A DNA stretch of 64,000 bases from Phaeosaccion multiseriatum (GCA_965112735.1 OZ218950.1:310001-374000); one strand, 5' to 3'; shown: positions 3,001-64,000, counted from the first letter of the stretch. Notes: a model not told the origin generated them from the sequence alone. Numbers and translations are program-made.

Positions 3001-6000
3001 CTCCAATCCACTCCAATCCACTCCAATCCAATCCAATGCTTTCAACCAACCACCACCCCAATCCACCCCAATCCACTCCAATCCAATCCACTGCTTTCAA
3101 CCAACCACCACCCCAATCCACTCCAATCCACCCCAATCCACTCCAATCCAATCCAATGCTTTCAACCAACCACCACTCCAATCCACCCCAATCCACTCCA
3201 ATCCAATCCAATGCTTTCAACCAACCACCACTACAATCCACCCCAATCCACTCCAATCCAATCCAATCCAATCCAATGCTTTCAACCAACCACCACCCCA
3301 GTCCACCCCAATCCACTCCAATCCAATCCAATGCTTTCAACCAACCACCACCCCAATCCAGTCCAATCCAATCCAATGCTTTCAACCAACCACCACCCCA
3401 ATCCACCCCAATCCACTCCAATCCAATCCAATGCTTTCAACCAACCACCACCCCAATCCACCCCAATCCACTCCAATCCAATCCAATGCTTTCAACCAAC
3501 CACCACCCCAATCCACTCCAATCCACTCCAATCCAATCCACTGCTTTCAAGCAAGGACGGGCACCAGTCTTTATAGCCACTCCGGTCTGACAAATAAACA
3601 AAGCGTGAAGACTCTTGCTGTTAACAACCCACCTCAAAGTAGCACACCACGCTGCAGGCAGGGCTCTGTGCCGACTTGGGCAGCTGAAGGTTGAGAACGA
3701 ACATGAACGGCGTCTGCGAGAGGCCCCTGCTCCGACTGAGAAACGCCATCTTCTCCAGCCGGGCGCACGCCTTACCCTTGGACGCGATATGGTCGATCCT
3801 CCCGCTGTTGCCACCACCACCACCACTACCACCGCCACTGCCACCACCACCACCACCACCACCACCACTGCTGCCAGTGGCATCGACACCGCCATTGCTA
3901 CTAACATCGTAAGGGTTACCGTTGCTACTGCTGCTGCTGCTCGTCTGCCTGCGGTGGTGCAGGGGCCCGAAGAGGTGATGGTGATGGTGGTGCTTCCTCT
4001 TGCCCGCTAAGCCGCCTAAGCCGCCCGCTGTGCTTCCCTCTACTTGAAAGATGTCGACATGCACGAGAGGGCACCTCGCTGCCTTGGAGGGGCACTTGAC
4101 CTTGTCAACGAGATACGTAGGGCCTCGAACCTGTTGGACAGGAGGGAAGGAGGGAGGGAGGGAGGGAGGGAGGGAGGGAGGGAGGGAGGGAGGGAGGGAG
4201 GGAGGGAGGGAGGGAGGGAGGGAGGGAGGGAGGGAGGGAGGGAGGGAGGGAGGGAGGGAGGGAGGGAGGGAGGAAGGGAGGGAAAGAGGGAGGGAAGGGG
4301 GGAGGGAGGGAGGGAGGGAGGGAGGGAGGGAGGGAGGGAGGGAGGGAGGGAGGTAGGGAAGGAGGGAGGGAGGGAGGGAGGGAGGGAGGGAAGGAGGGAG
4401 GGAGGGAGGGAGGGAGGAAGGGAGGGAAAGAGGGAGGGAAGGAGGGAGGGAGGGAGGGAGGGTCTTATACTCCAGTCTCAGCATTGGGTGGATGGGACCC
4501 CCCCCGACCCCCTTCGTCACATACTCTCCGTCTGTCTATCTGTCCGTCTGTCTATCCGTCTCTGTCTCTCCCTCTCCCTCTGCCCATATGCCCCTCCCTC
4601 CCTCCCCTCCCCTCCCCTCCCCTCCCCTCCCCTCCCTCCTTCCCTCCCTCCCCCGCCTGTAAGTGACTTGCATTACCTTGAAGAGGTTCCCAGCCGCCGG
4701 TCCCGAGTCTCGAAAGGAATCCCGCAGCTCCGGCCTCAGGGAGGCTAATGGAGGCAGCGCCCGCTCGCTGACATACCCCCCCTCCGCTCCCATCCCGCCT
4801 AACTCACTTGGCTCGTTCGCCTCCTGTATCACCAATTGCTCCTGCTGCTGGTGCTGCGTCGCCAGCCTTGCTGCTGTATGTGTCTTTCCACTCCTGCCAC
4901 CACCACCAGAGGAGAGGGGCGGTAGGTCGCTGCTCTTCCCCCCCGTGAACAGAGGCCCGAACTCCACCTCCTCCAGCACCTCTCCCCCCTCCTCCTCCTC
5001 CTCCTCCTCCGCTCCTCCCTCCTCCTCCTTCCCTCCGCCCGTCCCCCTCTTGACCGACCCCACCGCCCTCACCGCCCTCACCCAATTGCCGAGGAAGGCC
5101 TGCACATCCGGTTCGTTCACTACTTGCTGCTGGGCACAGATGGCGTCCATAAGCCTCTGGACGGCACCCTGGACCTTGGAGGGCTCCATGGGGCCATCAC
5201 CATCATCCTTGCCCTTCTCTTCCTTTTCTACCATGTGGTTATACGACAACGCGTCGTCGCCGGCTGCAGAAGAAGGAGGGGGAGAGGGCGCCCGGTCGGA
5301 CGTGAGAGGCGAAGGGGGAGCAGTGGTTGCAGCTCGGGTAGAAGTGGGGCTCCTCCTGGGAGTGGGAATTGGGCTACTCCGGGAAGGGCTTGGGCTGCTC
5401 CTGGAAGTGGGACTCGGGCTACTTCGTGCCCTTGTCATCCCTGCCCCTGAGAGCTTCCGCTTGAACCCTGTCAATGTATCACCAACTGCTGTCCCCCTCA
5501 GAGCATCGGAGGACCTTCTCCTCCCGGTGCTCAGAACACGCTCCAGGCTTTTCCACATGTTGCCATCCCACTGGTGATGATGATGGTGATGGTGCTCCCG
5601 ACCGGGAACAAGTCCATCTCCTCCTCCATCTCCTCCTCCTCCTCCCTCTCCTCCCCCTCCTTCTCCCAACTTCGATGAGTGATGACCGTGCCCCTCCAGC
5701 AGCCCTCTCTCCACGAGCCGTGTCCGCAGAACAATGGTCTCCCCCATAGTCCGGCGAGTGACCCACGACCTCTCTCCCTCCCCTTCCACCCCACCTGCCA
5801 TTCGAACGCTCATACAGACTTGAAGGTCTCCCTCCACCCCTCCCGTACTACTGGTGCTGATGCTGCTGCAAGTGCTGCCCGACCCCAACCCCGACCCGGA
5901 GCCCGAGCCCAAGCCCAATGGCGGCGGCTGAAGGCCGAGAACAGTTACCTTGCAGCCCACCAGCGACGCTGCTCGCTTCCTCACCCCCGGCAAAGGTCCC

Positions 6001-6652
6001 GCCATGATAGACACACGAGTTGGTGATACAGTAGCAGTAGAAACGCCTCGGTCTCTCTCGCTCCTGCCAACTGTAGTCGCCCCGCCCCCCCGAATTCTCC
6101 CACCAGTACCATCACCATCTCCTGTACCACCAACACCACCGGACGTTTCGGAACAGCCGAAACGGCCGATGCTCAGTGGCCCATCTACTGCCACCTTCCT
6201 CCCCGTCGCCGCCTTCACCACCCTTCGCATGGCCCCATGCATCTTATCTCTGTGCAGCAGCGGCACGACTCGGCTGAACAGCTCACAGAGTTCTTCGTCG
6301 CGTCGCTGCTCGCGCTCGCGTCTCTCTACCTCGCGCAGATGGTGAAGCACTCCACTGCCATCTCCTCCTCCTCCTCCTCCTCCTCCTCCTCGGATCGCTC
6401 GATGCTCCCTCCCCACCACAGTCGTGACTGTTGCGACTTGGAAGCGTATTTGCTTGGACAGCGCTCCAAAGGGGTCGGGCAGGAAGGAAAGGAGCCATGC
6501 CAGGAGCTTCCCTCCCTTTACTCCTCCTCCCCCTCCTCGTCCCTGTTCTCTGGCTCTCTGCTCTGCAAAGATGTCACAGATGGCGGGAGCCTTTCCGCCA
6601 TAGTCTACAGGCAAAACGGACGCCTCCACAGAGCGGTGCATCCTGTTGTGAT

Positions 6653-6711
<59 letters not shown>

Positions 6712-7238
6712 GGGACAGAAAAGACGATAGAGAGGGGGGGGGAGAGGGGGGAAGAGAGGAGAGGGATGGGAGAGAGAAGGAGAAAGAGAATAAGAAGGGA
6801 GCGGGAGAGAGAGGGGGGGGGGGGGGGAGAGAGAAGCGAGAGAGTTTCCGATTGAGATTCAATCGCGGCCACAGAGGGCGAAGAAGAGCACCAACCCACC
6901 CAACCAACACGCGCTACAAACACATCGTGTGGCGTACTTGTGCCGCCAGAGCTCCTGCGCCGTAGACTGTCGGAGGACGACGGAGACTCTTGCTGCAGTG
7001 CCCTCCGGCAGCAGAGGCCGCAAGCTCGCCCAGATAAAGGGGAAGGTGGAGGGGGCGTTGACCACATCCAGACTGTGCAGAATGCCTGTGGGCAAAGGAA
7101 AGGGGCAACGGCAGGTATGTCGTCCGTGTAGATGTGGTAGATACTCATTCTTCACGGCCAGGTGTGAGGGGAGTAGGGGATTTGGTCCGTACGCTGTTGA
7201 TGCTTAAGAAGGACGGACAGGTACCTCTCCTGGGCCTG

Positions 7239-44666: not shown

Positions 44667-45017
44667 TTCGCTGGCCTGAGACGGCGTGAAAGGCGAAGGG
44701 TGGAAGGGTGTTAAGCGCTTAGCTAGGATTGCTCCACCTCACGGGTATTAGGACTGAGACAAGCGGTGGCAGTGGATGGGGAGGGACACGCAGGTGGATG
44801 GATTGAGAAAGGGGATGGCAGTGGATACAGCAGCAAGAGCATAAGTCGTATATTGTCTCATGTTCACCCTTCTTTGGAACTGGAACTCCATGTAATCAAG
44901 CTCTCGTGTATCCTCTTCCGCCTCCCTTGGGCCCATCCACTACCATCCCCTCGGTAGGCGGCGGGCTATAAAGTGTACGACGAGGAGCAGCTGAACGCCA
45001 TCATCACTCGGTTGTAA
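42020..45017 (+). CDS. PSMA5: 20S proteasome subunit alpha type-5; 6 exons
   Basis: [36 protein letters not shown]..., [34 protein letters not shown]. Last exon 44958-45017. Confidence 0.96.
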
Positions 45018-46286
45018 GTCAGTGAAGGTGTTCTGCAACAGGGACCACGAGAGAGTAGAACATAAAGGGATGTATCTATGGATGTAGGCCGACGCCATCC
45101 ACCCGTCACACCGATGGGCAGCAACAGGGTCGAGTCGGAGAGGAGAGGACAGCCGTGGGCTCAGCGTAGTAGGAGGGGCGAGCGAGTCAGAGAAAGCGAA
45201 GGAAGGGAGAGGTGGGCGTGGAGCGGAGCTGAGAAGACGCGTTGGAACGATGTCAGATTAGGCTCCCGCAGGGGGTCAAGAAGGGGTGAGCATCCTCCGT
45301 TGGGTGTAGGCAATCGTCTTCAGGGAAGAAGCTGGAATAGAAGATGAGGGAGGATGGAGGGTGCAAGGGGCGGCGAGCGGGGCGACTGAATCCACTGGAG
45401 TAGCAGCACGAGCAGCGGTAAGACCAATCGCAGCAGCAGCGAGCAACAACCGCAGATGCAGCAGCAGTAGCTGGTGGGGGATTAGAAAGCAGCAAGTGCT
45501 TTGTTTTTGGCGCTTGTCGTCAGCAGCGCGTTGTAGCTGGTGCGGTGCGGCAGGGGGGAGGGGGAGGGGCATCAGCCAGCACCGGTGCTGGCAATGGCAA
45601 GCCTTCCATGAGGTGCAGGCTCGTCAGACTGGGCAGATGGAAGGGAGCATCGCAGAGGTAGAGCTTGGCTTAAGAATTGCTCGTATGCTCCTTGATGGTG
45701 ATGGACCTTTCACTCCTCTTTCCTCCCCCCCTCTCAGGTGGCACATAAGCTGTTAAGCATTTAATTTCGATAATTCACTCTCACCTCACTGCTATCGTAT
45801 GTGTTTTGCACAAACTGTCCCTTCCACTCCCGGTGTCACAGACGGGGATTAGCAAAGGGGGCAACAAGGCTCGGGGGGCCAATGAACGGAAACTGAAACT
45901 AAATCGCATGTTCCTGGGCTCCTCCCTTCTTCCCATCTCCCCATCTTCCCCCCTCCCTGACTTCAGACGGCGGCGCGGACTTGTTGGAAGCGTTCGAGTT
46001 GGCGTAACAAGCATTCGTTTGGTTCTCGAGTACCCTGGTGTCGTTACCACTTGGGCCAGGCGCTTGGGGACCTCCTTTGTCTTCAGACTGAAGCATTCAA
46101 ATGCAATTGTCACTCCTCGTCAGGATTAATAAGACCCTGTTTCTCAGGTGGATCGAGAGAGACAGTGAAAGAGCAGACGCAGTGGATGGACTTGAAGCCC
46201 CTTATGCCCTAAGTTGGATTTGGACCTGTTGAAGAAACGCAAAGGAGGTGCAAGGAGGATTGTTTGAAGGGCGCGGAGTTGTGAAA

Positions 46287-48263
46287 ATGCGGAAGAGGTG
46301 TACTGTTGAGGGGTGCGACAAGCATCGGCTGCAAGGAGGACTTTGCGTTGGGCACGGAGCTGTGCTGAAGAGATGTAGTGTTGAGGGGTGCGAGAAGCAG
46401 CGGGTCCAAGGGGGACTTTGCCAGGCCCATGGAGCTGTGCGGAAGAAGTGTACTGTGGAGGGGTGCGACAAGCATCGGGTCCAAGGAGGACTTTGCGAGG
46501 CCCATGGAGCTGTGGTGAAGAGGTGTACTGTTGAGGGGTGTAACAAGCATCGGGTCCAAGGAGGACTTTGCCAGGGCCATGGGGCTGTGGTGAAAAAAAA
46601 AAAGAGGTGTACTGTTGAGGGGTGCGAAAAGCAGTCGCAACGGGGGGGACTTTGCATTGGGCACGGGGCTGTGGTGAAGAGGTGTACTGTTGAGGGGTGC
46701 GAGATGTATATTAGAGCTTATGGGCTCAGTATTGGAGCGCTCGAGGTAAGTTGTAACCATGTGTAGATGCGTGTATGTGTGGTATTGATGGAGCGTGATG
46801 TGGAGGGGAAGAGGATGGTAAGGGTGGTAGAGTAGAGTAGAGGATAATGGGGAATGGGAAGGGAGTGAGGGGGGGAGGAGGAGATGAAGGGGTGTGGGAA
46901 GGAGTGAGGTGGTGGAGGTGATATGTGAACTATCCTACTGTGGGTGGTGCGGGTGACAAGGCGTGACTAACTGTGGTTGCTATGCTGTGTGCTGATGGTC
47001 TCGCTGTCTGCTGGCTGGTGTACTCCTGCTCCTCAGGCGGCCGCTCCGTCGATGGCTCCCATGAGCCCCCAGTCGAGGGTTTCTGCTGCTTCGTGCTGCG
47101 TCATGGTGGCTCGAAGGAGGGTGCCATACCTGATCTCCCGCTGTGAGAGGGCGCGTTGAAGGGCGAGGGACAGTTGTTGGCGCAGGAGGCCCTTGATGGG
47201 GCCCGTGGCTGCCGCCGCTGCGGGGCCGAGCCCTCTTGATGCCTTGTGGATGGCCATCGCCTCGATGAGCTCGTCCGTTTGGTGGCCCAGTCTGCCGTAC
47301 GTCTCGATTGCAATGCACTTCAGGGTTGAAGTCCCGGGCAGAAAACTGCCCAGGTAGTGAATGCGCTTGCGCTCTTCGGCGGCGGCTGCTGCGTGGCCTG
47401 GCGTGGTGGAGGCCCGTCCCACGTGGGTGGGGGCGGTGGGGTTGGTGACGGTGATGTGCGAGAAGCATTCGAAACAGGGAGGACTTTGCCTGGCCCATGG
47501 AGCTGTGCGGAAGATGTGTACTGTTGAGGGGTGCGATAAGCAGTCGCAACAGGGAGGACTTTGCCTGGCCCACGGAGCTGTGACCAAGAGGTGTACTGTT
47601 GAGGGGTGTGATAAGTATCCGAAGCAAGGTGGGATGTGCCAGAGGCATGCACGAGTGAAGAGGGAGGGGGCGGAGCAGAAGGAGGAGATTGGCCCGTGTA
47701 CGCCTGTGCCCAAGCGAGGAGCTGCGGAGGACATCAATGGGAGAGGAAGAAAGAGGGCAAAATGCGCCCCTTCAATGCCTGGGGGAGGGGAGGAGAGGAA
47801 GGAGGCACTGGAGGATGGGAATGGGGTGGGTTTGCTTGTGGGGCTGGGGCTTCATGTCGGGGACGAGATTCAGCTGCCCTGTGGCCTGTGGAGAGGGCTG
47901 GAAGATGGCGGGGCTGATGCTGCCACGGCCTTCTGCGGCCGTCGGGACAGGGAGCTATCCAATGGCGTGGTGGTGGCTGTGGGCCCGAGTAAAGTGTTGC
48001 TGCTGCCCCACCTCGCTGTGCGCACAAAGAGGAAGGGGGCGAGCCTGGAGAGCACGATCCGAGGCTTTGTGTCTGCCTACCACCGCTATCGCTCAGGAGA
48101 AGTAGGGGAGGATGATGATGACGACAAGCTAAAGGAGGAGTGGGCGGTGCTGGAGGAGAGCATGGTGACGGCGAGTGAGAAGAAGATACGCGGACGGAAG
48201 GCGCTGCGAGCGTGCGTGCGTGTGGAGGGCCCTGCTGCTGATACCTCGGGACTTGGGATTTAG
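46287..48263 (+). CDS. WRKY19-like Cys3His zinc-finger array gene A (8 fingers CxVEGCxK-x4-GGLCxxHG + ~190-aa C-terminal domain), interrupted by a retrotransposon in finger 6
   Basis: ORFs 46248-46766 and 47361-48263 join in frame once 46705-47463 (element plus one TSD copy) is removed. ~69-bp coding repeats. Confidence 0.85.
46705..47457 (-). mobile_element. 5'-truncated copy 1 (~750 bp) of a CRE-like RLE non-LTR retrotransposon
   Basis: Matches the 3' end of the 50831-57554 element (ITVTNP...ETYG). TSD GTGCGAGA at 46697-46704 and 47456-47463, with GT microhomology at the 5' junction. Confidence 0.92.
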
Positions 48264-49238
48264 TGACCCGATGGCCTTAATCCGCAGTGAAGCTTGGCAG
48301 GTGCAATGGGCGAACCGTAGAGATGTCAATTAAAGTGAATTACCCCACTCGCCGCACACTGTGCTTCACTGCGGGGGGGGGGGGGCGAACGAATGGTTTT
48401 AACATTCACAATGGACTTGGCAGCCTACGGGCACGCTGTGTGTGTCACTTGGCGCTGGAGCTGCAGAGATGACTTGGCACGACATCGGTTACAGGTATAG
48501 AAGGACGGCCTGATGGTAGATGGATGGCACACAGAATCCGAGGAGGGGGCTTGGAAGTGACTTGAAGATCGGGGGTGGGGGGAGAGGATCAGTGTATGGA
48601 TTGATTGATTGATTGATTGATTGATTGCACTCCCACTCGTGTCGACTGCAGCCCTGCCCCGTGTGTGTGTGTGTGTGTGTGTGTGTGAAGAGAGGAGTCA
48701 AGTCCAGGCATGGCCGCAAAGTCAGGCGTGGACTCGTCTCCTCTCTGCACATCACCCCACTTTACCCCCCTCCTCTCCAACTCACTCAACTCCACCTCTC
48801 CACTCCAATAGAGCCTCCAAGCCTCCACTCCACTGCACGAGCCGAACTAGTCAAGAGGGTGGATGCCTCTCCTCTCTTCACACCACTCACTCCACCACCT
48901 CTGGGATCTCTGTTGACCCCCCTGACCCCCCTCCCTCAACACCAGTCGGGTGCTCTTGCCATCCTTATACCTGTCCATGCACGCCTTCCTCTCTCTCTCT
49001 CCACTGTGTATTCGTGTATTTATGTCTTTGCTCTCCGCCCTCAAGGGGTGGCAGTGGATGGGGAGGGGCACGCAGGGGGGTGGATTGAGACAGGGGATGG
49101 CAGTGGATATGCAGCAAGAGCGTGAGTCGTATATTGTCTCATGTTCACCCTTCTTTGGAACTGGAACTCTAAGTAATCACTCTCTCGTGCATCCTCTTCC
49201 CCCTCCCCTCGGCCCATCCGCTGCCATCCCCTTGGTAG

Positions 49239-49298
49239 GCGGCGGGCTATAAAGTGTACGACGAGGAGCAGCTGAACGCCATCATCACTCGGTTGTAA
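49239..49298 (+). pseudogene. Orphan duplicate of the PSMA5 terminal exon with intact TAG acceptor
   Basis: 60 nt identical to 44958-45017. Confidence 0.85.
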
Positions 49299-50571
49299 GT
49301 CAGTGAAGGTGCAACACGGACCACGAGAGAGGAGAACAAAAAGGGATGTATCTATGGATGTAGGCCGACGCCATCCACCCGTCACACCGATGGGCAGTAA
49401 AAGGGTCGAGTCGGAGAGGAGAGGACAGCCGTGGGCTCAACGTAGTAGGAGGGGCGAGCGAGCCAGAGAAAGCGAAGGAAGGGAGAGGGGGGCGTGGAGC
49501 GGAGCTGAGAAGACGCGTTGGAACGATGTCAGATTAGGCTCCCGCAGGGGGTCAAGGGGTGAGCATCCTCCGATGGGTGTAGGCAATCGCCTTCAGGGAA
49601 GAAGCTGGAATAGAAGATGAGGGAGGATGGAGGGTGCAAGGGGCGGCGAGCGGGGCGACTGAATCCACTGGAGTAGCAGCACGAGCAGCGGTAAGACCAA
49701 TCGCAGCAGCAGCGAGCAACAACTGCAGACGCAGCAGCAGTAGCTGGTGGGGGATTAGAAAGCAGCAAGTGCTTTGTTTTTGGCGCTTGTCGTCAGCAGC
49801 GCGTTGTAGCTGGTGCGGTGCGGCAGGGGGGAGGGGAGGGGCATCAGCACCGGTGCTGGCAATGGCAAGCCTTCCATGAGGTGCCGGCTCGTCAGACTGG
49901 GCAGATAGAAGGGAGCATCGCAGAGGTAGAGCTTGGCTTAAGAATCGCTCGTATGCTCCTTGATGGTGATGGGCCTTTCACTCCTCTTTCCTCCCCCCCT
50001 CTCAGGTAGCACATAAGCCGTTAAAGCCTTTAATTTCGATAATTCACTCTCGCCTCACTGCTATCGTACGTGTTTTGCACAAACAGTCCCTTCCACTCCC
50101 GGTGCCACAGACGGGGGGGGTCGGATTATATAATTAGACCTTGATTAGACAAAGGGGGCAAGGCTCGGGCCAATGAACGGAAACTGAAACTAAATCGCAT
50201 GTTCCTGGGCTCATCCCTTCTTCCCATCTCCCCATCTTCCCCCCTCCCTGACTTCAGACGGCGGCGCGGACTTGTTGGAAGCGTTCGAGTTGGCGTAACA
50301 AGCATTCCTTTGGTTCTCGAGTACCCTGGTGTCGTTACCACTTGGGCCAGGCGCTTGGGAACCTCCTTATGTCTTCAGACTGAAGCATTCAATTTTCACT
50401 CCTCGTCAGGATTAATAAGACCCTATTTCTCAGGTGGATCGAGAGAGACAGTGAAAGAGCAGACCCAGTGGATGGACTTGAACCCCCCATGCCCCAAGTT
50501 GGATTTGGACCTTTTGAAGAAACGCAAAGGAGGTGCAAGGAGGATTGTTTGAAGGGCGCGGAGTTGTGAAA

Positions 50572-53500
50572 ATGCGGAAGAGGTGTACTGTGGAGGGGTG
50601 CGACAAGCATCGGCAGCAAGGAGGACTTTGCGTTGGGCACGGGGCTGTGGTGAAGAGGTGTACTGTTGAGGGGTGCGAGAAGCAGTCGCTACAGGGAGGA
50701 CTTTGCGTGGCCCACGGGGCTGTGGTGAAGAGGTGTACTGTTGAGGGGTGCGAGAAGCAGTCGAAACAGGGAGGACTTTGCCTGGCCCACGGGGCTGTGG
50801 TGAAGAGGTGTACTGTTGAGGGGTGCGAGATGTATATTAGAGCTTATGGGCTCAGTATTGGAGCGCTCGAGGTAAGTTGTAACCATGTGTAGATGCGTGT
50901 ATGTGTGGTATTGATGGAGCGTGAGGTGGAGGGGAAGAGGATGGTAAGGGTGGTAGAGTAGAGGATAATGGGGAATGGGAAGGGAGTGAAGGGGGGAGGA
51001 GGAGATGAAGGGGTGTGGGAAGGAGTGAGGTGGTGGAGGTGATATGTGAACTAGCCTACTGTGGGTGGTGCGGGTGACAAGGCGTGACTAACTGTGGTTG
51101 CTATGCTGTGTGCTGATGGTCTCGCTGTCTGCTGGCTGGTGTACTCCTGCTCCTCAGGCGGCCGCTCCGTCGATGGCTCCCATGAGCCCCCAGTCGAGGG
51201 TTTCTGCTGCTTCGTGCTGCGTCATGGTGGCTCGAAGGAGGGTGCCATACCTGATCTCCCGCTGTGAGAGGGCGCGTTGAAGGGCGAGGGACAGTTGTTG
51301 GCGCAGGAGGCCCTTGATGGGGCCCGTGGCTGCCGCCGCTGCGGGGCCGAGCCCTCTTGATGCCTTGTGGATGGCCATCGCCTCGATGAGCTCGTCCGTT
51401 TGGTGGCCCAGTCTGCCGTACGTCTCGATTGCAATGCACTTCAGGGTTGAAGTCCCGGGCAGAAAACTGCCCAGGTAGTGGGTGCGCTTGCGTTCTTCGG
51501 CGGCGGCTGCTGCGTGGCCTGGCGTGGTGGAGGCCCGTCCCACGTGAGTGGGGGCGGTGGGGTTGGTGACGGTGATGTCGCAGAGGAGGTTTCTCCGCAG
51601 GGGTGCGTCCGCTCCCGGGAAGCTACCTGCGGGATAGGTCAGGTCCATGCGTAGGTCTCGGCCTGCTCGGGTGCCCGTGGGGCCGTCGAAGCAGGTCTGG
51701 TCCTCTACACGTGCTCCTCCAATGCCCACGCTGTGCATCATCCTCCCGAAGGCCTTGACGAGGAGGTGGTGTGTGTGGTTGTGGAGGCCGGTGCGGGGGC
51801 AGATGGTGGCGTGGGTAGTGCTTGCCGTGCGGGCGCAGCCTGTGCCAAGGCAGGGTGGGGGCGGGTCCGCGTATGGCGTGTTGACACCGAGGTTGCGACG
51901 AAGGGCCATGGTCCATTCTGCGGGGGCCATGGTGTTGTGGCCGTGGGGGAGCGCTCCGAGGAAGGCCATGGCGCCCCTTCCTCGCTGTGAGTGGAGTCGG
52001 GCTGTTGCCATTTCCTGTGTCTCCTCTCCCCTCTGTGCCTCTGCCGGTGTGACGTCGATGGTGGCGATGCTCTGCGTCAGCTCCTCATGGCGGCGTTTGT
52101 GGATGAAGGTGGTGAGGGCCTTCTGGACGCCGTGGGTCGGTTGACGGCCTGCCTGATGGCTCCTGCGCACGTTGCGTCGCGCTGTGTCCTGGGCTTGGTG
52201 GTCAGGCGGCTCGAGTACGCGTGAGCGGGCCTCGTCGAACTGTGCCTGACCCACTGCTTGGATGAGGGGGGCCTCAGGGACCCCCTCCTCGTGCAGGAGG
52301 TTGACGCTGTCGGCGACGCTCTTGAGGGCTCCGTTGGTGAACAGCTGGTCCGGTAGGGCGCTCTCTTGGGAGCCTTCCCGGCGTGCGGTGCGGCTGAGCA
52401 GGGGGGGAGGGTGAGCATCTTGTTGCCAAGGTATGCTGCTGGGGCGATGTCGTGGAGGCTGGTGAGGCCGAGGCCGCCGAAGCGCCGTGCCGTATGCATT
52501 TGTAGGCGCTGTGTCTCCGTCCATGGCTCCTCTTGTGCATCTGCGGCCTGCTCCAGAGGGGGGCATCGGGGAGTCGCATGATGTGGGCCATTGTCGCTCT
52601 GTTGGTGCGGTCTGCCCTGCTGCCGAGGGCGCGTCGGAAGATGGAGGGGTCAATGGCTCTCGCCAGGTGTGTGAGCCTGGCTGGGAGGCATTGGAGGAGG
52701 ACGAGGGTGGCCGCCTGGGTGTTGTCCCACTCGCTGCAGTGTTTGGCGAGTTGGAGGTAGCCCCTGGGGTCTTCTTGGCCGAGGATGTTGCGGAGGTACT
52801 CTTCGATGTACTCCTCCGTGCCGACGGGGATGCCGGCTACCACGGTACCCTCGGTGGCAAGTGTGGCGCCCTGCCGTTGGGCGTGGTCCCTGTCAGCCTG
52901 TGTTGGCTGCTTGCCTTTGCCCATGAGGTAAACCGTTTTCCTCTCGTTGAACTCGAGGCCCAAGCCTCGGAATTGGGCTTGGAGATGGGCATGGCGTGGG
53001 GCGTAGGTCTGTAGGGGTGCGTCGGGTTCCAGCTGGTCCATGAGGTCGTCTGCGTAGGCGGAGATGGTGGGGCGGTTCGCTGCGGTGTCGGCTGTGTTCT
53101 GAACTTTCAGCACTGGGTGGATGGCGGCTGCGAACATGAGAGGCCCTTCTGGTGCTCCTTGGTTGACTCCGGAGCTCTGGTGGATGGTCTGGGTGCCGTC
53201 TGGTGTGAGGGCGTTGTGGGCGGAGGCGTGGGAGAGGCTGGCGATGGCGTAGTTGATGCCTGCTGGGTCGATGGTAGGGAGTGCTCCTGAGGCTAGGACG
53301 CCTCTGGCACGCGACACGCGGGTGTAGGCCTTGGTGATGTCATGCAGCACGACGGTTTTGCCGGCATCGTGCGCTAGCTGGGCTGCTGCGGCGTGTGTTT
53401 CCCCTCCGCCTCTGACCGCTACCGCTAGCTGTCCTGCGCTTCTGAGCTCTGGGCCCACCCTGTCCGCGATGAGCTTCATGTGACAGCTCTCCACGAGGCT

Positions 53501-56500
53501 GCGGTAGAGGTTGGGGGATGTCACAGGACGCGCTTTCTCGCCGAGGGCTGCGGCGCTGGTGCTGAACCACCGTTTGGCGAGCTGTGGAGGCAGTGGAGTG
53601 TCCCCCGTTCGGAGCAGCTCGTAGGTGTCAGTCAGAGCCTCCACGATTGCGTACTCCTGGGGGCTGTCCGGGGGGTACTTGACGTGGCTCGCCCTGCGCC
53701 CGTCTGCTCCTTGGCCCTTCCAGAAGTTGACCCTCCGGTAGGTCAGCAGCATGGCTGTGCTGATCTCCTCTCTGGTGACGTCGTTGCCATTCTCGGGGTG
53801 CTCCTGCACCTGGGTTCTGGCGTACTCCCTGGCTGCTGCTGCTGCTGTGTTGATCTCTTCGAGGCTCTCGTCGACGTGCGCTTGCTGGAGGCGTCTAAAG
53901 GTCTCGTGTGTGGGAGGGAGGTGGCCGTCTCTGCTCTTTGTGCTGAGCCTCGCCGCGGCCTTGTGCAGGCCTCCGGGTTTGGTGAGCAGGTGGGCGCAGG
54001 TTTCTCTCCGTCGCTCCTCTGTCTGTGCCTGTGCTGGGGGTGGTGGGCGGCGTGCGTGTGCTGTGGCTATCGCTGCTTGTGCGAGTGGGGCGATGTCGAG
54101 GTCGAGGACCATCTGTATCCGCTGCTGGCGGCTGTAGGCTCCGTCTTTAGAGAAGAGCATGGCAGGGAGGAGGTGGTGGAAGACATCCCATGCCAGAAGG
54201 GTGTGGAGGGTGGCGTCGGTGGGGCCGTTCTTGTGGGCCCTCAGCGCCCTGTTCCAGTTGTTGAGCGCTCTTTGCTGTAAGCTGATAATCGAGCTGACGT
54301 GGCGGGGGTTGCACTGCGCTACTGTCTCAAACACGAGTGTTGAGAGGATGGTACCCTGCGGGTCCAGGGCCCCTAGGCGGAGGACGTTTGGGTGCTGCAT
54401 GGGCCATCCTTCCTCGGGTGTATCGTCGTTGGCTGGCCCTTCTCCGTCCCCTCCGTCCCCGCCGCTACCTCCTTGGCCTCTGCTCCGTCCTCCTCCCCCT
54501 CGTCTCGCTGCTGCTGCTGTGGTTCCTTGCGTGCGTGTGCTATCTCCCCCTGCCCTTTCTCTCTGAGGTCCCCTCTCTGCTGCTGCTCCTTGTCCGTTTC
54601 CTTCCCCCCTCCCTCGTCCTCCTCTTCCTCCTTCTACTCCACTTGGCGCTGCTGCGATTGCTCCTCCTCCTCCTCCTCCTCCTCCTCCTTCCGCGTGCCC
54701 TCGCCCTCCTCCTCTGCCCGTGGGGGTGGTGGGTTGGTACGGGTTGAGCCTGGCCGTTGCTGTCGTGTGCTGGGGCGTTGCCGTACGCGACGGGTCCTCG
54801 TTTGGGTCTGGGCCTAGATAGGCGTTCTCGAGGTCGTTGAGGGGGCCTTGGTAGGCCGATGCTGCGTTGCCTTGGGTGAGGATGGTCCTGAGGGCGGGGA
54901 TGGCTCGTTGAGCTTGGTAGCCAGCCATGCAGCCTTGCGCGGGGCAGGGGAGGTTGCCTGGTGGTATGACGGGCTGCTGGTTGGCTCTCCTCAGTGTGGC
55001 TTGGTCGTTCAGGTGGTGAAGGAGGCACGCGGGGTGAACGGTGTGTTGGCAGCGTCGGGTGCGTACTGGCCACTCCGTGGTTGGTGCGATGAAAGGGGGG
55101 TCCGCGTCTGACATGCATATGCAGCATATCGGGGCTGGGGGGGCGGTAGGTTGGGGTGGGGGTGTGTGTCGGGTGGTGGGGGGTGGCTGGGACTGGCGGC
55201 GTCGCCCTTGGCTGGCCTGCGCGTGCTGCTGATGCGACTCTCTGCGCTCCCTCGCTAGGCGATCCCTTGCGCGGCCCATAGCTCTCCCTCCTTGTGCTGT
55301 GATGGCCTGCTCGATCGTGTGCCGGTAGCAGGGGTTGCGGCAGTAGGGGCAGAGGTGGTCGTTGCGGTTGGGGTACCTGCTCATGACTCCCAATGCGCAG
55401 TGGTTGTGCACGTGATGTTCGCCTTCGTGCATGGCGACTTGTGCTTGGCCAGTGAGCGGTTCCATACACACCGGGCAGTTGGGTAGCTCCTCGTTGTTGG
55501 TGGGGTCGCCTCCTCCTTCTCCTTCGTCACCTCCTCCCGCTGCTTGCCCTTCCCCTCCTTCTGCCGCTGCTTCCCGTGCCAGTGCTGGGCGCTCTCCTCC
55601 GCCTCTGCTGTTTTCGCCCTCTTCCCCCCTGCTACTACTCTTCCTTCGCGGTCTCCTCGTCCCCCTCCCCTGTGTCCCGCTCGCTCTCCTCTCCCTCCTC
55701 CCTCCTGGTCGTGCTCTCGTGTAGTGTCTGTCCCACCTGCTCTTGTCGGTGGGGGCATGCTTCGAGCTCGTTGGATGGTTGGCGGTGCTGGTAGGCTTGC
55801 GGCTTCGTGTGCTCGTATGCAGGCGTTGCATAGGGGTTGTCGTAGGCCTGATTGCGGGAAGCGGGTAAGGAAGGATCTGCCGGAGTTTCGGTGGGCCAGG
55901 TTGCCGCATCCACTTGTGCAGTCCCGGAGCTGGTACGTATTATTCTGTGGTCCGCTCTGTGGGCCGTTGGCGCGGTACCACAGGATTGACGCGGCCTGGG
56001 GGTGGTGTTCGCGCATCCATCGGTCCCACTCTCTGCCGCGGTTCGGGTGGTGGCTCGACTGGTGCCTGATGAGGCGGTCTCTTGTGTTGCCTACCGTGAC
56101 GAAGGTGTCGTGGCATTCGCCAAAGTTGCAGAGGATGCCCCCTTGAATGTTTCCATTGTCGGGGTGTCTTCGGTACACTCGGGCGTTGTTGGGGTTGTCC
56201 TCCGGTGTTGGTGGGCTGGGTGTGGTTGCGTCGCTTTGGGCGGGGGGTGGTGGCGGTCCTGGTGCGGTTCCCCGGGGGGCCTGTCTCGTGCGTAGGGCGA
56301 GGGCTTGCCCCGGCGCCCACCACGGTGTGGCCATGGTGTTGGCGAAGGGGGAGGTGGTGGTGTTGTTGGTGTGGTCGCGTAGGGCGTGGCCGTAGCGCTC
56401 AACGATGGCTTGGACGTCGGGTAATACCGCGATGAGTTCCTCCTGTCGTGAGGCGGTGATGTAGTCGTTGACCAACTCGTTGGAGGTGATCTCTTGGCCT

Positions 56501-59500
56501 GCGAGCGTGTGGGCATAGGCCTCCACGATCTGTTGCCATCCAAGGGGGTAATCTCCTCCCCCATGTGGTCTTCCGGGGGTGGTGGGGGGGCCTCCGCTCC
56601 TTAGAGCTTGTCTGAGGAGGGGCATATAGAAGTGCGAGTTGGTAGGCGGGAGCGCCGCGTCGCGCTGGTGGCGTATGGTGTTGCTCCATGTCGTTGGTGC
56701 GTGTCCATGCGTGTCTGTTTCGAGTGATGCTGTCTCTTCCTCGTGCGTCGTGGGGGGTGGTCGTACGAGGTCGGCGATGGCCTCGGCCGTGTTGTGGTGG
56801 GTCAGTTCCGTCGCGGTGAGGTTTAGGCTTGCGAACTCAGCGCTGATGCGTCGGCTGGCGGATGCTGGCGCTTGTTCGTTGAAGAAGAGGTTCGGGTGTT
56901 GCCGTATGGGGGTCGTGGCTGTGAGGTGGGTGTCTTCGTATTCGTCTTGGAGGATGGAGACGATTTGCTCTGTGATCCCGTGTGCGTTTCTGTGAGTTGA
57001 CGCGTTGGTGGTTTGGGCTGGATCTGAGGCTCGGAAAGTGGCGGTTGGCCTTTCCGGGCTGCGTGCTCGGGGGGTCCTGCTTCGTCCCCTTGGCCTCGTG
57101 GTTGGCTGCATGGGTGCTGGGCTGGTCGCTGTGGGGGGTGGTGCTGTTGTAGGGCCTGTTGTCTCGCTGGCGGGCGTGGTAGATCTCCTGGCGGCTGGTG
57201 CTGTTTGTTGCCGTGTCGTTGAGATCGGTTGTGGTTGCTGCTGCTGGGGGTGGGCTTCCGCTGCTGTTGCTGGTGGGAGCTGTGGGTCCTGCGGGAGGGT
57301 GTTGCGGGGTGCTGCGGCCGCTGGTGGAGCCGTGATGGGGGTGGGCACGCCTTCCCGTGCTGGTGTTTGGCGAATTGCTGCTGCCGCTGCCCGTCTCTCC
57401 CTTCTTTCGAGCCGCTGCTGATCGCGGCTCATAGGTGGCTCCTGCTGGGTTGCTGTGAGGTTTGCTGGTGTCTCCTGGGCTCCGGGGGGCCGCGTGGCCC
57501 CCCTGTCGTCCCCTTCCATGGTGGCCCTGTCTTAAGCAGAAAAAAAAGAAGGGTGTGCGAGAAGCAGTCGAAACAGGGAGGACTTTGCCTGGCCCACGGG
57601 GCTGTCATGAAGGGGTGTACTGTTGAGGGGTGCGACAAGCATCGGATCCAAGGAGGTCTTTGCCTGGCCCATGGAGCTGTGGTGAAGAGGTGTACTGTTG
57701 AGGGCTGCGACAAGCAACGGATCCAAGGAGGACTTTGCGTGGCCCACGGAGCTGTGAGGGTACGGAAGAGGTGTAGTGTGGAGGGGTGCGAGATGTATAT
57801 TAGAGCTTATGGGCTCAGTATTGGAGCGCTCGAGGTAAGTTGTAACCATGTGTTGATGCGTGTATGTGTGGTATTGATGGAGCGTGATGTGGAGGGGAAG
57901 AGGATGGTAAGGGTGGTAGAGTAGAGGATAATGGGGAATGGGAAGGGAGTGAGGGGGGAGGAGGAGATGAAGGGGTGTGGGAAGGAGTGAGGTGGTGGAG
58001 GTGATATGTGAACTATCCTACTGTGGGTGGTGCGGGTGACAAGGCGTGACTAACTGTGGTTGCTATGCTGTGTGCTGATGGTCTCGCTGTCTGCTGGCTG
58101 GTGTACTCCTGCTCCTCAGGCGGCCGCTCCGTCGATGGCTCCCATGAGCCCCCAGTCGAGGGTTTCTGCTGCTTCGTGCTGCGTCATGGTGGCTCGAAGG
58201 AGGGTGCCATACCTGATCTCCCGCTGTGAGAGGGCGCGTTGAAGGGCGAGGGACAGTTGTTGGCGCAGGAGGCCCTTGATGGGGCCCGTGGCTGCCGCCG
58301 CTGCGGGGCCGAGCCCTCTTGATGCCTTGTGGATGGCCATCGCCTCGATGAGCTCGTCCGTTTGGTGGCCCAGTCTGCCGTACGTCTCGATCGCAATGCA
58401 CTTGAGGGTTGAAGTCCCGGGCAGAAAACTGCCCAGGTAGTGCGTGCGCTTGCGCTCTTCGGCGGCGGCTGCTGCGTGGCCTGGCGTGGTGGAGGCCCGT
58501 CCCACGTGGGTGGGGGCGGTGGGGTTGGTGACGGTGATGTCGCAGAGGAGGTTTCTCCGCAGGGGTGCGTCCGCTCCCGGGAAGCTACCTGCGGGATAGG
58601 TCAGATCCATGCGTAGGTCTCGGCCTGCTCGGGTGCCCGTGGGGCCGTCGAAGCAGGTCTGGTCCTCTACGCGTGCTCCTCCAATGCCCACGCTGTGCAT
58701 CATCCTCCCGAAGGCCTTGACGAGGAGGTGGTGTGTGTGGTTGTGGAGGCCGGTGCGGGGGCAGATGGTGGCGTGGGTGGTGCTTGCCGTGCGGGCGCAG
58801 CCTGTGCCGAGGCAGGGTGGGGGCGGGTCCGCGTATGGCGTGTTGACACCGAGGTTGCGACGAAGGGCCATGGTCCATTCTGCGGGGGCCATGGTGTTGT
58901 GGCCGTGGGGGAGCGCTCCGAGGAAGGCCATGGCGCCCCTTCCTCGCTGTGAGTGGAGTCGGGCTGTTGCCATTTCCTGTGTCTCCTCTCCCCTCTGTGC
59001 CTCTGCCGGTGTGACGTCGATGGTGGCGATGCTCTGCGTCAGCTCCTCATGGCGGCGTTTGTGGATGAAGGTGGTGAGGGCCTTCTGGACGCCGTGGGTC
59101 GGTTGACGGCCTGCCTGATGGCTCCTGCGCACGTTGCGTCGCGCTGTGTCTTGGGCTTGGTGGTCAGGCGGCTCGAGTACGCGTGAGCGGGCCTCGTCGA
59201 ACTGTGCCTGACCCACTGCTTGGATGAGGGGGGCCTCAGGGACCCCCTCCTCGTGCAGGAGATTGACGCTGTCGGCGACGCTCTTGAGGGCTCCGTTGGT
59301 GAACAGCTGGTCCGGTAGGGCGCTCTCTTGGGAGCCTTCCCGGCGTGCGGTGCGGCTGAGCAGGGGGGGGAGGGTGAGCATCTTGTTGCCAAGGTATGCT
59401 GCTGGGGCGATGTCATAGGGGTGCGAGAAGCATTCGCAACAGGGAGGACTTTGCGTGGCTCACGGAGTTGTGAGAATACGGAAGAGGTGTACTGTTGAGG

Positions 59501-60234
59501 GGTGCGAGAAGTATCCGCAACAAGGAGGACTTTGCAAGGGCCACGGGGCTGTGGTGAAGAGGTGTACTGTTGAGGGGTGTGATAAGTATCCGAAGCAAGA
59601 TGGGATGTGCCAGAGGCATGCACGAGTGAAGAGGGAGGGAGCGGAGCAGAAGGAGGAGTTTGCCCGGTGTACGCCTGTGCCCAAGCGAGGAGCTGCGGAG
59701 GACATCAATGGGAGAGGAAGCAAGAGGGCGAAATGCGCCCCTTCAATGCCTGGGGGAGAGGAGGAGAGGAAGGAGGCACTGGAGGATGGGAATGGGGTGG
59801 GTTTGCTTGTGGGGCTGGGGCTTCATGTCGGGGACGAGATTCAGCTGCCCTGTGGCCTGTGGAGAGGGCTGGAAGATGGCTGGGCTGATGCTGCCACGGC
59901 CTTCTGCGGCCGTCGGGACAGGGAGCTATCGAATGGCGTGGTGGTGGCTGTGGGCCGGAGTAAAGTGTTGCTGCTGCCCCACCTCGCTGTGCGCACAAAG
60001 AGGAAGGGGGCGAGCCTGGAGAGCACGATCCGAGGCTTTGTGTCTGCCTACCACCGCTATCGCTCAGGAGGAGCAGGGGAGGATGATGATGGCGACAAGC
60101 TGAAGGAGGAGTGGGCGGTGCTGGAGGAGAGCATGGTGACGGCGAATGAGAAGAAGAGGCGCGGGCGGAAGGCGCTGCGAGCGTGCGTGCGTGTGGAGGG
60201 CCCTGCTGCTGATACCTCGGGGCTTGGGATTTAG
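50572..60234 (+). CDS. WRKY19-like zinc-finger array gene B (9 fingers + C-terminal domain), interrupted twice (fingers 4 and 7)
   Basis: Segments 50572-50830, 57563-57793 and 59429-60234 rejoin in frame. The C-terminal domain is nearly identical to gene A. Confidence 0.85.
50831..57554 (-). mobile_element. Apparently full-length (6.7 kb) CRE-like site-specific non-LTR retrotransposon, copy 2
   Basis: TSD GTGCGAGA at 50823-50830 and 57555-57562. 35-nt 5' UTR with GCCACCATGG, ~320-nt 3' UTR ending ...CTAATATACA with no poly(A). Confidence 0.93.
51154..57519 (-). CDS. Retrotransposon polyprotein (~2,122 aa if three 1-bp homopolymer frameshifts are corrected): C2H2, C4, 2x RING, RT, CCHC, restriction-like endonuclease
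   Basis: RT: KGQGADG, KARPVT, QLAVAVRGG, HDITKAY, GVNQGAPEGPLMF, AYADD (~53045-53059), GLEFNERKT, AGIPVG, GGLGL. CCHC: CLGTGC..H..C. RLE: RMDL..CDITVTNP..AAEERKRTHY..IAIETYG, a CRE-type signature. Frameshifts at ~55624-55629, 52558-52563 and 52401-52407. Confidence 0.92.
57794..59414 (-). mobile_element. 5'-truncated copy 3 (~1.6 kb) of the same retrotransposon
   Basis: ORF 58116-59381 matches the C-terminus of copy 2. 12-bp TSD AGGGGTGCGAGA at 57782-57793 and 59417-59428, with 2 non-matching nt (AT) at the 5' junction. Confidence 0.93.
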
Positions 60235-63652: not shown

Positions 63653-64000
63653 AACGGAAACGGAAACTAAATCGCATGTTCCTGGGCTCCTCCCTTCTTC
63701 CCATCCCTAACTTCAGACGGTGGCGCGGACTTGTTGGAAGCGTTCGAGTTGGCGTAACAAGCATTCGTTTGGTTCTCGAGTACCCTGGTGTCGTTACCAC
63801 TTGGGCCAGGCGCTTGGGAACCCCCTTATGTCTTCAGACTGAAGCATTCAATTTTCACTCCTCGTCAGGATTAGTAAGACCCTGTTTCTCAGGTGGATCG
63901 AGAGAGACAGTGAAAGAGCAGACGCAGTGGATGGACTTGAAGCCCCTTATGCCCTAAGTTGGATTTGGACCTGTTGAAGAAACGCAAAGGAGGTGCAAGG
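63653..64000 (+). repeat. Third copy of the zinc-finger-gene upstream region; a further array gene probably begins just past the window
   Basis: Near-identical to ~45885-46255 and ~50175-50540. Confidence 0.88.

Follow-up and report, generated by a model that had tools for sequence, protein, structure and literature searches.

A young non-LTR retrotransposon with a restriction-like endonuclease occurs almost only at one fixed base of a protein-coding zinc-finger repeat in Phaeosaccion multiseriatum

The window, which is the whole stretch of 64,000 nucleotides analysed, contained two copies of a finger gene on the plus strand, interrupted by three insertions of one element on the minus strand. 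The features were as follows (window coordinates).

46287 to 46704, plus strand: 5' part of host finger gene copy 1, with a start codon and six Zf_WRKY19 fingers, the sixth broken off after ...C-E (translation, Pfam)
46697-46704 and 47456-47463: target duplication of insertion 1, 8 bp, 2 of them ambiguous with the element
46705 to 47457, minus strand: insertion 1, a 5'-truncated element copy of 753-755 bp (~0.75 kb; element positions ~5968-6715; 98.4% to a full-length copy by blastn)
47456 to 48264, plus strand: rest of host gene copy 1, with the right-hand target duplication (47456-47463), three fingers, a C-terminal domain of ~200 aa and a stop codon at 48262-48264 (Pfam)
50572 to 50830, plus strand: 5' part of host finger gene copy 2, containing the empty target sites 50668 and 50743
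50823-50830 and 57555-57562: target duplication of insertion 2, 8 bp, plus 2-3 extra bases
50831 to 57552, minus strand: insertion 2, a full-length element of ~6.72 kb, without poly(A) and without terminal repeats
50831 to 51156, minus strand: element 3' UTR, ~326 nt, C/A/U-rich
50872 to 51156, plus strand: GT..AG intron of 285 nt in the host sense, spanning almost the entire element 3' UTR
51470 to 51855, minus strand: CCHC zinc knuckle and PD-(D/E)xK restriction-like endonuclease (H..E..D..D..K..Y; alignment, AF2 model, Foldseek)
52922 to 53440, minus strand: reverse transcriptase core with YADD motif (Pfam RVT_1, 30.4 bits against a cut-off of 29.6)
55337 to 55480, minus strand: first RING-like zinc finger of the ORF2 frame (Pfam zf-RING_2, E 3e-5, under the curated cut-off)
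55381 to 57519, minus strand: ORF1-like frame of 712 aa, with C2H2-like and C4-like cysteine motifs close to its end
57555 to 57793, plus strand: middle part of host gene copy 2, with three fingers between the right-hand duplication of insertion 2 (57555-57562) and the left one of insertion 3 (57782-57793)
57782-57793 and 59417-59428: target duplication of insertion 3, 12 bp, plus 2 extra bases
57794 to 59416, minus strand: insertion 3, a 5'-truncated element copy of 1.62 kb (element positions ~5095-6715; 5' end at 59414-59416; 2 extra bases at the 5' junction)
59417 to 60234, plus strand: 3' part of host gene copy 2, starting with the right-hand 12-bp duplication (59417-59428) and ending with a stop codon at 60232-60234

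The 3' junctions of the three insertions (46704/5, 50830/1 and 57793/4), read directly from the sequence, fell at the same base inside the Zf_WRKY19 finger repeat, as the first-pass annotation had claimed. Host and element were joined identically in all three (GAGGGGTGCGAGA^TGTATATT, the caret marking the junction; ...GAGGGGTGCGAGA^TGTATATTAGAGC as read at each site). All three elements were antisense to the finger gene, also as first described. Matching target sites were still empty at 46383, 50668 and 50743, where the annotation had recorded one, near 50750. The flank AGCA(G/T)TCG(A/C)AACAGGGAGG, which it had taken to be common to the insertions, was not shared by other insertions and was not required.

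The host finger repeat, with a unit of ~24-25 aa (75 bp), was identified as Zf_WRKY19 (Pfam PF24906, E 9e-32; 109 bits against a cut-off of 27; 5 stretches within 139 aa) and carried the pattern C-x4-C-x9-C-x2-H in tandem units, as in that family. The reading frame of host gene copy 1 ran on across the target duplication (translation). Nine uninserted finger genes had a start codon, complete open frames, 5-10 fingers each and a conserved C-terminal domain, and the dN/dS of that domain (~0.6) indicated only weak constraint. By its domain, open frames and dN/dS, the target is a protein-coding family, in agreement with the earlier description of a protein-coding tandem repeat. Finger units were present in hundreds of copies in tandem gene arrays, and had been amplified in tandem along with their 5' regions. 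Interrupted genes made up about half of the 22 finger genes sampled, with a maximum of four insertions in a single gene. Probable RNA contigs covered the fingers and the C-terminus at high depth.

The full-length element began with 5' CCTTC(T)8CTGCTTAAG... and ended with ...CTCTAATATACA 3'. The ORF1-like frame had no Pfam match, and in some copies was in frame with the part that follows; a second RING-like finger lay ~100 residues downstream of the first in the ORF2 frame (sequence). The reverse transcriptase had 366 homologues (best E 3e-57), the full-length ones among them matching RVT_1 with up to 56.7 bits. At their C-termini these proteins were also homologous to the C-terminal piece of the element (E values as low as 1e-35), with invariant columns C, C, H, C and then H, E, D, D, K, Y in an alignment of 17 sequences. 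The AF2 model of the C-terminal domain (pLDDT 87.5) had R2 retrotransposon proteins as all of its top 7 PDB matches in Foldseek (prob 1.0), followed by Prp8. An APE/Exo_endo_phos domain was not matched by Pfam in the element. In the full-length copy of the window the endonuclease was in a different frame from the reverse transcriptase, and the frame changes fell at C/G runs. None of seven sampled full-length copies had a single uninterrupted frame through the upstream part, reverse transcriptase and endonuclease; their frame differences were all of 1-2 bases, gained or lost, in C/G runs, and may be assembly error or real damage. No promoter, 5' processing ribozyme or Rfam match was found in the element. 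A structured 3' UTR was rejected, its fold not being significant (z -0.71).

With its YADD reverse transcriptase, constant 3' end, variable 5' truncation, variable duplications and lack of terminal repeats, the element is a non-LTR (LINE-type) retrotransposon with a reverse transcriptase and a restriction-like endonuclease (RLE), and the first-pass assignment was upheld. The C-terminal CCHC and PD-(D/E)xK motifs, without an N-terminal APE, and the sequence-specific insertion into a repeated target agreed with the early-branching RLE group (CRE, NeSL, R2, R4, Hero, Genie).

The 285-nt host-sense intron was present in the other two insertions as well (46746-47030 and 57835-58119). A spliced joint from 57832 to 58118 (cut +2) occurred in runs X5 and X6, and the joined form was absent from the genome. 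Removal of the whole element by splicing (donor 41 nt inside the 3' end, CAG acceptor at the element 5' end) was rejected as a candidate; it leaves 64 extra bases, a number not divisible by three. Rescue of the host protein was rejected likewise, the observed 285-nt splice meeting a stop after 56 codons.

Insertion sites were surveyed across the genome (67 Mb) through matches to the element 3' end, the 25-mer of which had 116 genomic copies. About 82 of 96 exact 3' ends (16-mer) were preceded by the 11-nt core GGGGTG[C/T]GA[N]A, for which the chance per random insertion was ~2.8e-6 (about 3e-6), and eight further ends retained the core over 5-8 nt. In a sister variant, the core preceded 7 of 12 ends. 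Ends outside a full target numbered about 6-14 of 108, and about 85-90% of the element copies were in the target; off-target loci and a large cluster on contig 8 were known through 35-nt pattern matches only. Nearly all copies lay at the same finger base, and the first-pass observation held across the genome.

The target was the most conserved DNA stretch of the finger unit, GAGGGGTG(C/T)GA(N)A^AG, which encodes E-G-C-(E/D/N)-K. Target sites were on at least 4 contigs and included both the TGC and the TGT version of the cysteine codon, and fingers of the E, D, N and K-type were occupied. The annotation had stated that CDK and CNK fingers are never hit; this held within the 64,000-nt window, where none was occupied, but not genome-wide, as CDK (GAC/GAT) and CNK (AAC) fingers were occupied elsewhere, and GAG is therefore at most preferred. 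The bias toward CEK was ~4-fold when judged by the left flank, and non-significant with the right-hand duplicate as the true target. Head-to-tail tandems of the element at the regenerated site were found, also in independent read sets.

The 5' ends and duplications were tabulated for 16 young copies in 284 kb of contig 1. These shared one 3' end and had at least 10 different 5' ends, each directly adjoining a duplicate of the target, 5-12 bp long; 1-6 extra bases were present at some of them. The differing truncations and the duplications show that the insertions were independent, as had been proposed for the three in the window. The left and right duplicates differed by one base in 4 of the 16 insertions; to explain this one must assume in addition that copies recombined or that read-through RNA acted as template. 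The 5' end was kept in about 30 copies in the genome, and seven sampled full-length copies were 98.1-99.99% identical. The family is young and probably still active.

It is very likely that the element belongs to an autonomous early-branching RLE non-LTR family that uses target-primed reverse transcription to enter a protein-coding repeat at a single fixed phosphodiester bond. The endonuclease would nick the coding strand after ...GA(N)A, and the freed 3'-OH would prime cDNA from the 3' end of the element RNA, which would fix the antisense orientation. A cut in the second strand 5-12 bp upstream would produce the target duplication, and incomplete cDNA would produce the many 5'-truncated copies. 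We infer the nicking chemistry, the strand order and the part of the protein that would read the DNA; short read-through of the RNA into the flanking target may aid priming. With its hundreds of fingers in tandem gene arrays, the finger family serves the element as a landing pad of many copies, much as R2 uses rDNA.

A sequence-specific enzyme would not be needed for the shared junction if a single ancestral insertion, or a small number of them, had spread through the arrays by segmental duplication or, between the 75-bp repeats, by gene conversion or unequal crossing-over. Some copies were clearly duplicates (a 608-bp element with the same right flank at C1:179371 and 196917, and a set with a 4.1-kb period at C1:680-690 kb), and non-matching duplicates in 4 of 16 copies are expected from recombination between copies. 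However, the variety of truncation points and extra bases among the 16 copies spoke against such spread; because each 5' end adjoins its own target duplicate, conversion or duplication is unable to create such ends. With insertions in different finger subfamilies (TGC and TGT; E, D, N and K-type) on at least 4 contigs, and with the catalytic residues of the endonuclease conserved, spread by duplication was extremely improbable. Specificity that arises mainly by base-pairing, with the target-like 3' tail of read-through element RNA annealing to nicked or broken finger DNA and a weakly specific endonuclease, was very unlikely: more than 80 copies had the nick at exactly the same base, the second-strand cut was confined to a narrow 5-12 bp window, and tandem insertions re-used the site keeping only ~11 nt of upstream target. 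These three features fit positioning on the DNA by the protein itself, as R2 does it; orientation and position among 75-bp repeats would not be set so precisely by annealing alone. It would nevertheless account for off-target copies that keep 2-8 nt of target-like sequence by the 3' end (...GCGAGA, ...CGACA, ...GTGTGAGA), which fit 3' transduction, for 3 of 4 mismatched duplications with GAGA at the left and GAC or GAT at the right, as though the left base had been copied from donor RNA, and for GGTGTG-like extra bases at the 5' junction of full-length copies in TGC-type fingers, which resemble TGT-type donor flanks.

There was likewise little probability that the target is a selfish or decaying repeat (a gene of another mobile or viral element, or a pseudogene array) and not a functional host family, in which case the insertions reduce to known repeat insertion. 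The low constraint on the C-terminal domain, the tandem amplification of units with their 5' regions, the share of sampled finger copies already broken and a weak Pfam resemblance of the host protein to a cysteine cluster found with KDZ transposases are compatible with such a repeat. The strong match, however, was to Zf_WRKY19 and not to the transposase-associated cluster, the finger copies formed clustered arrays and were not dispersed with terminal repeats, and the nine complete uninserted genes and the probable RNA contigs also argued for a functional family.

R2 was among the closest known systems. The element and R2 were alike in the order of reverse transcriptase, CCHC knuckle and PD-(D/E)xK endonuclease, in the use of a single fixed bond of a multicopy target, in many 5'-truncated copies, in the lack of poly(A) and in occasional tandems. 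R2 targets 28S rDNA of animals, whereas the target here is protein-coding; R2 is co-transcribed with rRNA, which is impossible for the present element because it is antisense to its target gene. Unlike R2, no HDV-like ribozyme was found in the element and its 3' UTR was unstructured; RING-like fingers stood in place of a detectable Myb domain, and duplications of 5-12 bp were a further difference. The finger-coding target, the lack of Myb in Pfam and an E value of only 0.11 against R2 chains in phmmer place it outside the R2 clade.

SLACS and CZAR also have two reading frames. Together with CRE1/CRE2 and NeSL-1/Utopia they resemble the present element in being early-branching RLE elements, of protists and others, that use one site in a tandem or multicopy gene. 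Their targets are spliced-leader or U2 snRNA genes (PMC4640811), that is, small RNA genes, whereas the target here is not a spliced-leader gene. The nearest relatives of the element were unnamed proteins of metagenome and genome contigs (~30% identity), and a word-indexed search, run with the protein and again with a profile of 12 sequences, matched unnamed proteins only; cluster look-up likewise yielded no names, and ESM Atlas matches were generic reverse transcriptase clusters (Fornicata, diatoms, arthropods). On contigs that encode four of the nearest relatives (L051-L054), the flanks had no finger-like motif, and the finger target may therefore be no older than this element family. L051 had a head-to-tail tandem in a different sequence.

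To our knowledge, the described targets of site-specific RLE retrotransposons are RNA genes, telomeres, microsatellites and other transposons. No paper was found in the literature that describes the finger-repeat target; the earlier claim of a completely new target class was weakened by the RHS genes of trypanosomes, the nearest precedent (PMC7563717, citing Bringaud et al. 2002). There, this protein-coding multigene family has a fixed hot spot in the coding sequence for non-LTR insertion by ingi/RIME and L1Tc; more than half of its members are pseudogenes, with the element between two gene halves. Ingi and L1Tc are APE-type, with only a relative site preference and most copies elsewhere, whereas the present element is RLE-type with ~85-90% of copies in the target. 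Unlike in RHS, the target is an intragenic tandem repeat, so that a single finger gene can take several insertions (up to 4). Tx1L/Tx2L, Dada and other repeat-in-repeat transposons target other transposons or small RNA genes (PMC3706591, PMC8869645); they too land safely by choosing a sequence that is conserved and multicopy, but with different enzymes (APE, or a DNA transposase). The observation is real, and the target is a new class within a known kind.

Target-primed reverse transcription has its models in the site-specific RLE retrotransposons, which also underlie the new R2-derived gene-insertion tools. The present family shows that RLE machinery can adopt a conserved codon stretch in a tandem protein repeat, with 85-90% fidelity and tolerance of at least two degenerate positions, and is a natural case for the study of target-specificity change. 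It also provides a new protein-DNA recognition pair (core ~13 bp), a candidate for RNA-templated insertion outside rDNA. As a young high-copy system with 99.9% identical copies and with filled and empty sites adjacent, it would allow the cost to the host family and the role of array turnover to be measured.

It is very improbable that the finger family consists of sequence-reading nuclear proteins that act against the element, so that the element disrupts the genes of its own would-be repressors, and that host-sense transcripts spliced at the antisense intron feed antisense or small-RNA control. If true, a site-specific retrotransposon and a family of zinc-finger genes would be engaged in an arms race directly in the genome. 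The finger layout cited for it was a fixed scaffold with hypervariable positions directly after the insertion codon.

On the plus strand, all three inserts in the window opened with TGTATATTAGAGCTTATGGGCTCAG immediately 3' of GAGGGGTGCGAGA, and their far ends were differing internal points of one 6.7-kb sequence. Direct reading of the junctions bore out the claim of the first-pass annotation that the three insertions fall at one base of the finger repeat (host/insert joints 46704/5, 50830/1 and 57793/4):

Insertion at 46704/5: element positions ~5968-6715, 8-base target repeat after the insert
Insertion at 50830/1: element positions 1-6715, 8-base target repeat after the insert
Insertion at 57793/4: element positions ~5095-6715, 12-base target repeat after the insert

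In the assembly (67.1 Mb, 22 contigs), the 3'-terminal 25-mer of the element occurred 116 times with at most 2 mismatches, and its reversed control 0 times. The 19 bases upstream of each exact 16-mer end (n = 96) were listed and the classes counted by hand. By this count, ~82 of the 96 ends were preceded by the finger core GGGGTG(C/T)GA(N)A, exactly or with one mismatch, which upholds the proposed specificity for the finger repeat, the flanks not being mostly unrelated. A further 8 ends retained 5-8 nt of the core, several of them being second in a head-to-tail pair, and 6 had no core; 3 of these 6 lacked the usual preceding A and may not be real element ends. The chance of a random insertion behind the 11-mer core in the correct orientation was ~2.8e-6. 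The core was present at 7 of 12 ends of a sister variant starting TTTATATT. Targets clustered on contig 1 (0.09-0.78 Mb), contig 8 (1.43-2.26 Mb) and contigs 13, 2 and 5, and spanned fingers with TGC and TGT cysteine codons and differing upstream codons. The sole sequence common to them was GT-N-GAGGGGTG-Y-GA-N-A.

Head-to-tail pairs, in which 7-11 nt of target separated the 5' end of one element from the 3' end of the next, were frequent (~10 of 96 ends); an independent public run also had one such joint in its contigs. The closest NCBI-derived relative, encoded on contig L051 (GCA_040384045.1), lay head-to-tail with its own copy in unrelated, AT-richer sequence (evidence at 1-62 and 4365-4410 of L051). 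This tandem suggests that relatives are also site-specific, for other targets.

The junctions were analysed in 284 kb of contig 1 (C1), made up of the window (310-374 kb of C1) and 20 further stretches, where mapping of the element gave 16 young copies and a single cluster of old fragments. Each young copy was followed by its own 5-12 bp target duplicate, 7 of the 16 were full length, and 5' junctions frequently had 1-6 extra bases or a short microhomology of a few bases. That the window insertions are independent events, as first proposed, agrees with these 16 copies: the presence of at least 10 distinct 5' ends, together with the separate duplicates, rules out gene conversion or segmental duplication as a general source. 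Duplicated copies do exist: C1:179371 and 196917 share one 608-bp copy, and C1:680-690 kb has a set with 4.1-kb periodicity. Copy counts therefore exceed event counts. The seven full-length copies were 98.1-99.99% identical, three at separate sites being just 1-2 substitutions apart over 6.7 kb. The 5' terminus was kept at 30 places, so that about one copy in four is full length. The old fragments are evidence that an older subfamily also occupied this array, and show that the lineage has been resident in finger arrays for some time; their nest lies directly upstream of a young 6.4-kb copy:

C1:451440-454518: old element fragments, 80-91% identity, one inverted

Fingers with CDK or CNK codons had been described as never hit; this was true within the window, but elsewhere GAC, GAT and AAC fingers were occupied. 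Genome-wide, 153 GAGGGGTGYGAGAAG and 131 GAY sites were empty, and ~50 GAG and 9 GAY sites were occupied (odds ratio 4.8, p 8e-6; duplicated units inflate this result). Occupancy in the 284-kb sample was 12/64 for GAG, 3/61 for GAC, 1/23 for GAT and 1/16 for AAC (p 0.007). Left and right duplicates differed at the variable base of this codon in 4 of 16 insertions, 3 of which had GAGA on the left and GAC or GAT on the right. With the right copy taken as the original target, the GAG preference was ~2-fold and non-significant (p 0.11). A shared downstream flank did not hold up as a requirement, since right flanks varied downstream of the lysine-codon AG, in step with the hypervariable finger residues.

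C1:190017, 196917, 613154 and 88173: mismatched duplicates (GAGA vs GACA/GATA)

Two tandem copies of the host gene were read at 45.5-60.5 kb of the window:

46287-48264, plus strand: host gene copy 1, interrupted once
50572-60234, plus strand: host gene copy 2, interrupted twice

Each started with M-R-K-R-C-T-V-E-G-C in translation, continued in finger units of 25 aa (R/K-C-x-V-E-G-C-(E/D/N)-K-x4-G-G-L-C-x2-H-G-A-V-x-K) and closed with a C-terminal domain of ~200 aa. The finger units matched Pfam Zf_WRKY19 (PF24906; 109 bits, E 9e-32; cut-off 27), and both host frames were unbroken once insert and target duplicate were subtracted. Nine uninserted genes in the 284-kb sample were open throughout, with a start codon, 5-10 fingers and the C-terminal domain, and finger-gene units were grouped in tandem arrays without dispersal. 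Contigs of the public run X5 covered fingers and C-terminus at a depth far above that of the element, and show neither strand nor expression level; X5 is probably RNA, because it held a GT..AG-spliced form without counterpart in the genome. Open frames, domain match, clustering and X5 contigs are evidence for a host protein-coding family as the target. Across the host C-terminal domain dN/dS was ~0.6, a weak selective constraint. About 10-11 of 22 sampled finger genes were interrupted, one carrying four insertions, an overestimate of damage because the sample was picked around insertions. A run of 11 A in one finger linker (46590-46603) gives three extra in-frame lysine codons, so that it reads VVKKKKRC, the usual form being VVKRC. 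Duplicated units of ~4.2 kb comprised a finger gene and the ~1.5 kb upstream of it, and the right end of the window is the start of one more unit:

44830-45570 vs 49110-49840: duplicated upstream pair
50241-50487 vs 63700-63946: duplicated upstream pair

The full-length copy had long frames on the minus strand. Its reverse transcriptase (RT) matched Pfam RVT_1 at 30.4 bits, barely over the 29.6-bit cut-off, with a YADD motif; the C-terminal piece had no Pfam match. Searched exhaustively with HMMER, the RT piece had 366 relatives (best E 3e-57; ~30% identity), every one an unnamed protein encoded on a contig of a metagenome or draft genome. The C-terminal piece, in another frame of the window copy, matched the C-termini of RT-matching proteins (E down to 1e-35), and RT and C-terminus are thus parts of one protein. 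Alignment of 17 sequences showed invariant or nearly invariant columns C, C, H, C, followed by H, E, D, D, K and Y. These form the CCHC knuckle and PD-(D/E)xK signature that characterises the restriction-like endonuclease (RLE) in early-branching non-LTR elements. With this alignment as input, the AlphaFold model of the piece was confident (pLDDT 87.5, pTM 0.86) and had R2 retrotransposon proteins as its seven best PDB matches (probability 1.0), followed by Prp8; direct sequence similarity to R2 was marginal (E 0.11). Given the RLE signature and model, a fixed 3' end with varying 5' truncation, duplications that differ in length and the lack of terminal repeats, the element is an RLE-class non-LTR retrotransposon. 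Upstream of the RT were two RING-like Cys/His clusters (zf-RING_2 E 3e-5, below cut-off), which with C2H2-like and C4-like motifs are candidate DNA-reading parts. A RING-type finger is unusual for a non-LTR element. The 5' leader was short (~33 nt), Rfam gave no ribozyme or other family in the element, and the 3' UTR had no significant fold (z -0.7).

54920-56140, minus strand: two RING-like clusters, C2H2-like and C4-like motifs, upstream of RT

Junction anatomy and the R2 precedent allow the steps of insertion to be inferred. The RLE would nick the coding strand of the finger 3' of GA(N)A, and the nicked 3'-OH would prime reverse transcription of element RNA ending ...CUCUAAUAUACA; priming from this strand would fix the antisense orientation. 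A cut of the second strand 5-12 bp upstream would yield the target duplication, and an early stop of reverse transcription the 5' truncation. At the 3' end of off-target copies, 2-8 bases still resembled the target. Sequence that looks donor-derived was seen in the left duplicates of mismatched pairs and in the GGTGTG-like bases added at the 5' junctions of full-length copies. Both observations suggest that element RNA reaches a few bases into the target on either side, and that pairing with the nicked target aids priming. Recombination between copies is an alternative source of the mismatched duplicates. Full-length ends read ...CAG(A)7-8GAAGG, then variable GGTGTG-like bases, then the duplication (57540-57557 of the window and six C1 copies); in TGC-type fingers these bases are similar to the TGT-type target. 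They may represent donor flank carried along by 5' transduction, or else the element's true 5' terminus.

Reading frames varied among full-length copies. All frame-changing differences among the seven were of ±1-2 bases in C or G runs, a pattern typical of homopolymer errors in long-read assemblies, although they could be genuine. Depending on run state, the coding part would be two overlapping frames (two ORFs) or one of ~2,100 codons (one ORF).

Element ~956, 1299, 1916, 2937, 4982, 5138, 5273: frame-changing runs
Window ~56590, 56247, 55630, 54609, 52564, 52408, 52273: frame-changing runs

Targets of RLE elements in reviews and primary papers are rRNA, spliced-leader and U2 genes, microsatellites and telomeric repeats (PMC4640811, PMC5035012, PMC13580325), and a full-text literature search found no element targeting a zinc-finger or other coding repeat. 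The supposition of an undescribed target class stands to that extent, but is qualified by the trypanosome RHS multigene family, the nearest precedent. PMC7563717 (citing Bringaud et al. 2002) gives it a fixed ingi/RIME hot spot in coding sequence, with more than half of its members being element-bearing pseudogenes. Ingi/RIME are APE-type with a relative site preference only, whereas the present element is RLE-type. R2 rides on the pre-rRNA transcript; the finger-gene element cannot ride on a host transcript because it is antisense to its target gene. The system was rated as ordinary machinery with a new class of target.

Read in the host sense, the element had, 41 nt in from its 3' end, a textbook intron of 285 nt (GAG/GTAAGT ... 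CTAAC ... pyrimidine tract ... CAG/G), which spanned nearly the whole 3' UTR and whose AG overlapped the complement of the element stop codon:

46746-47030, plus strand: 285-nt GT..AG intron
50872-51156, plus strand: 285-nt GT..AG intron
57835-58119, plus strand: 285-nt GT..AG intron

Its exact deletion was present in contigs of runs X5 and X6 and the joined form was missing from the genome, so host-sense read-through transcripts are spliced. The splice did not restore the host frame, a stop following 56 codons past the junction. In X6, labelled as another organism of the same study, element pieces had 0-1 differences at a depth of ~3, for which library carry-over is more likely than an element common to both organisms.
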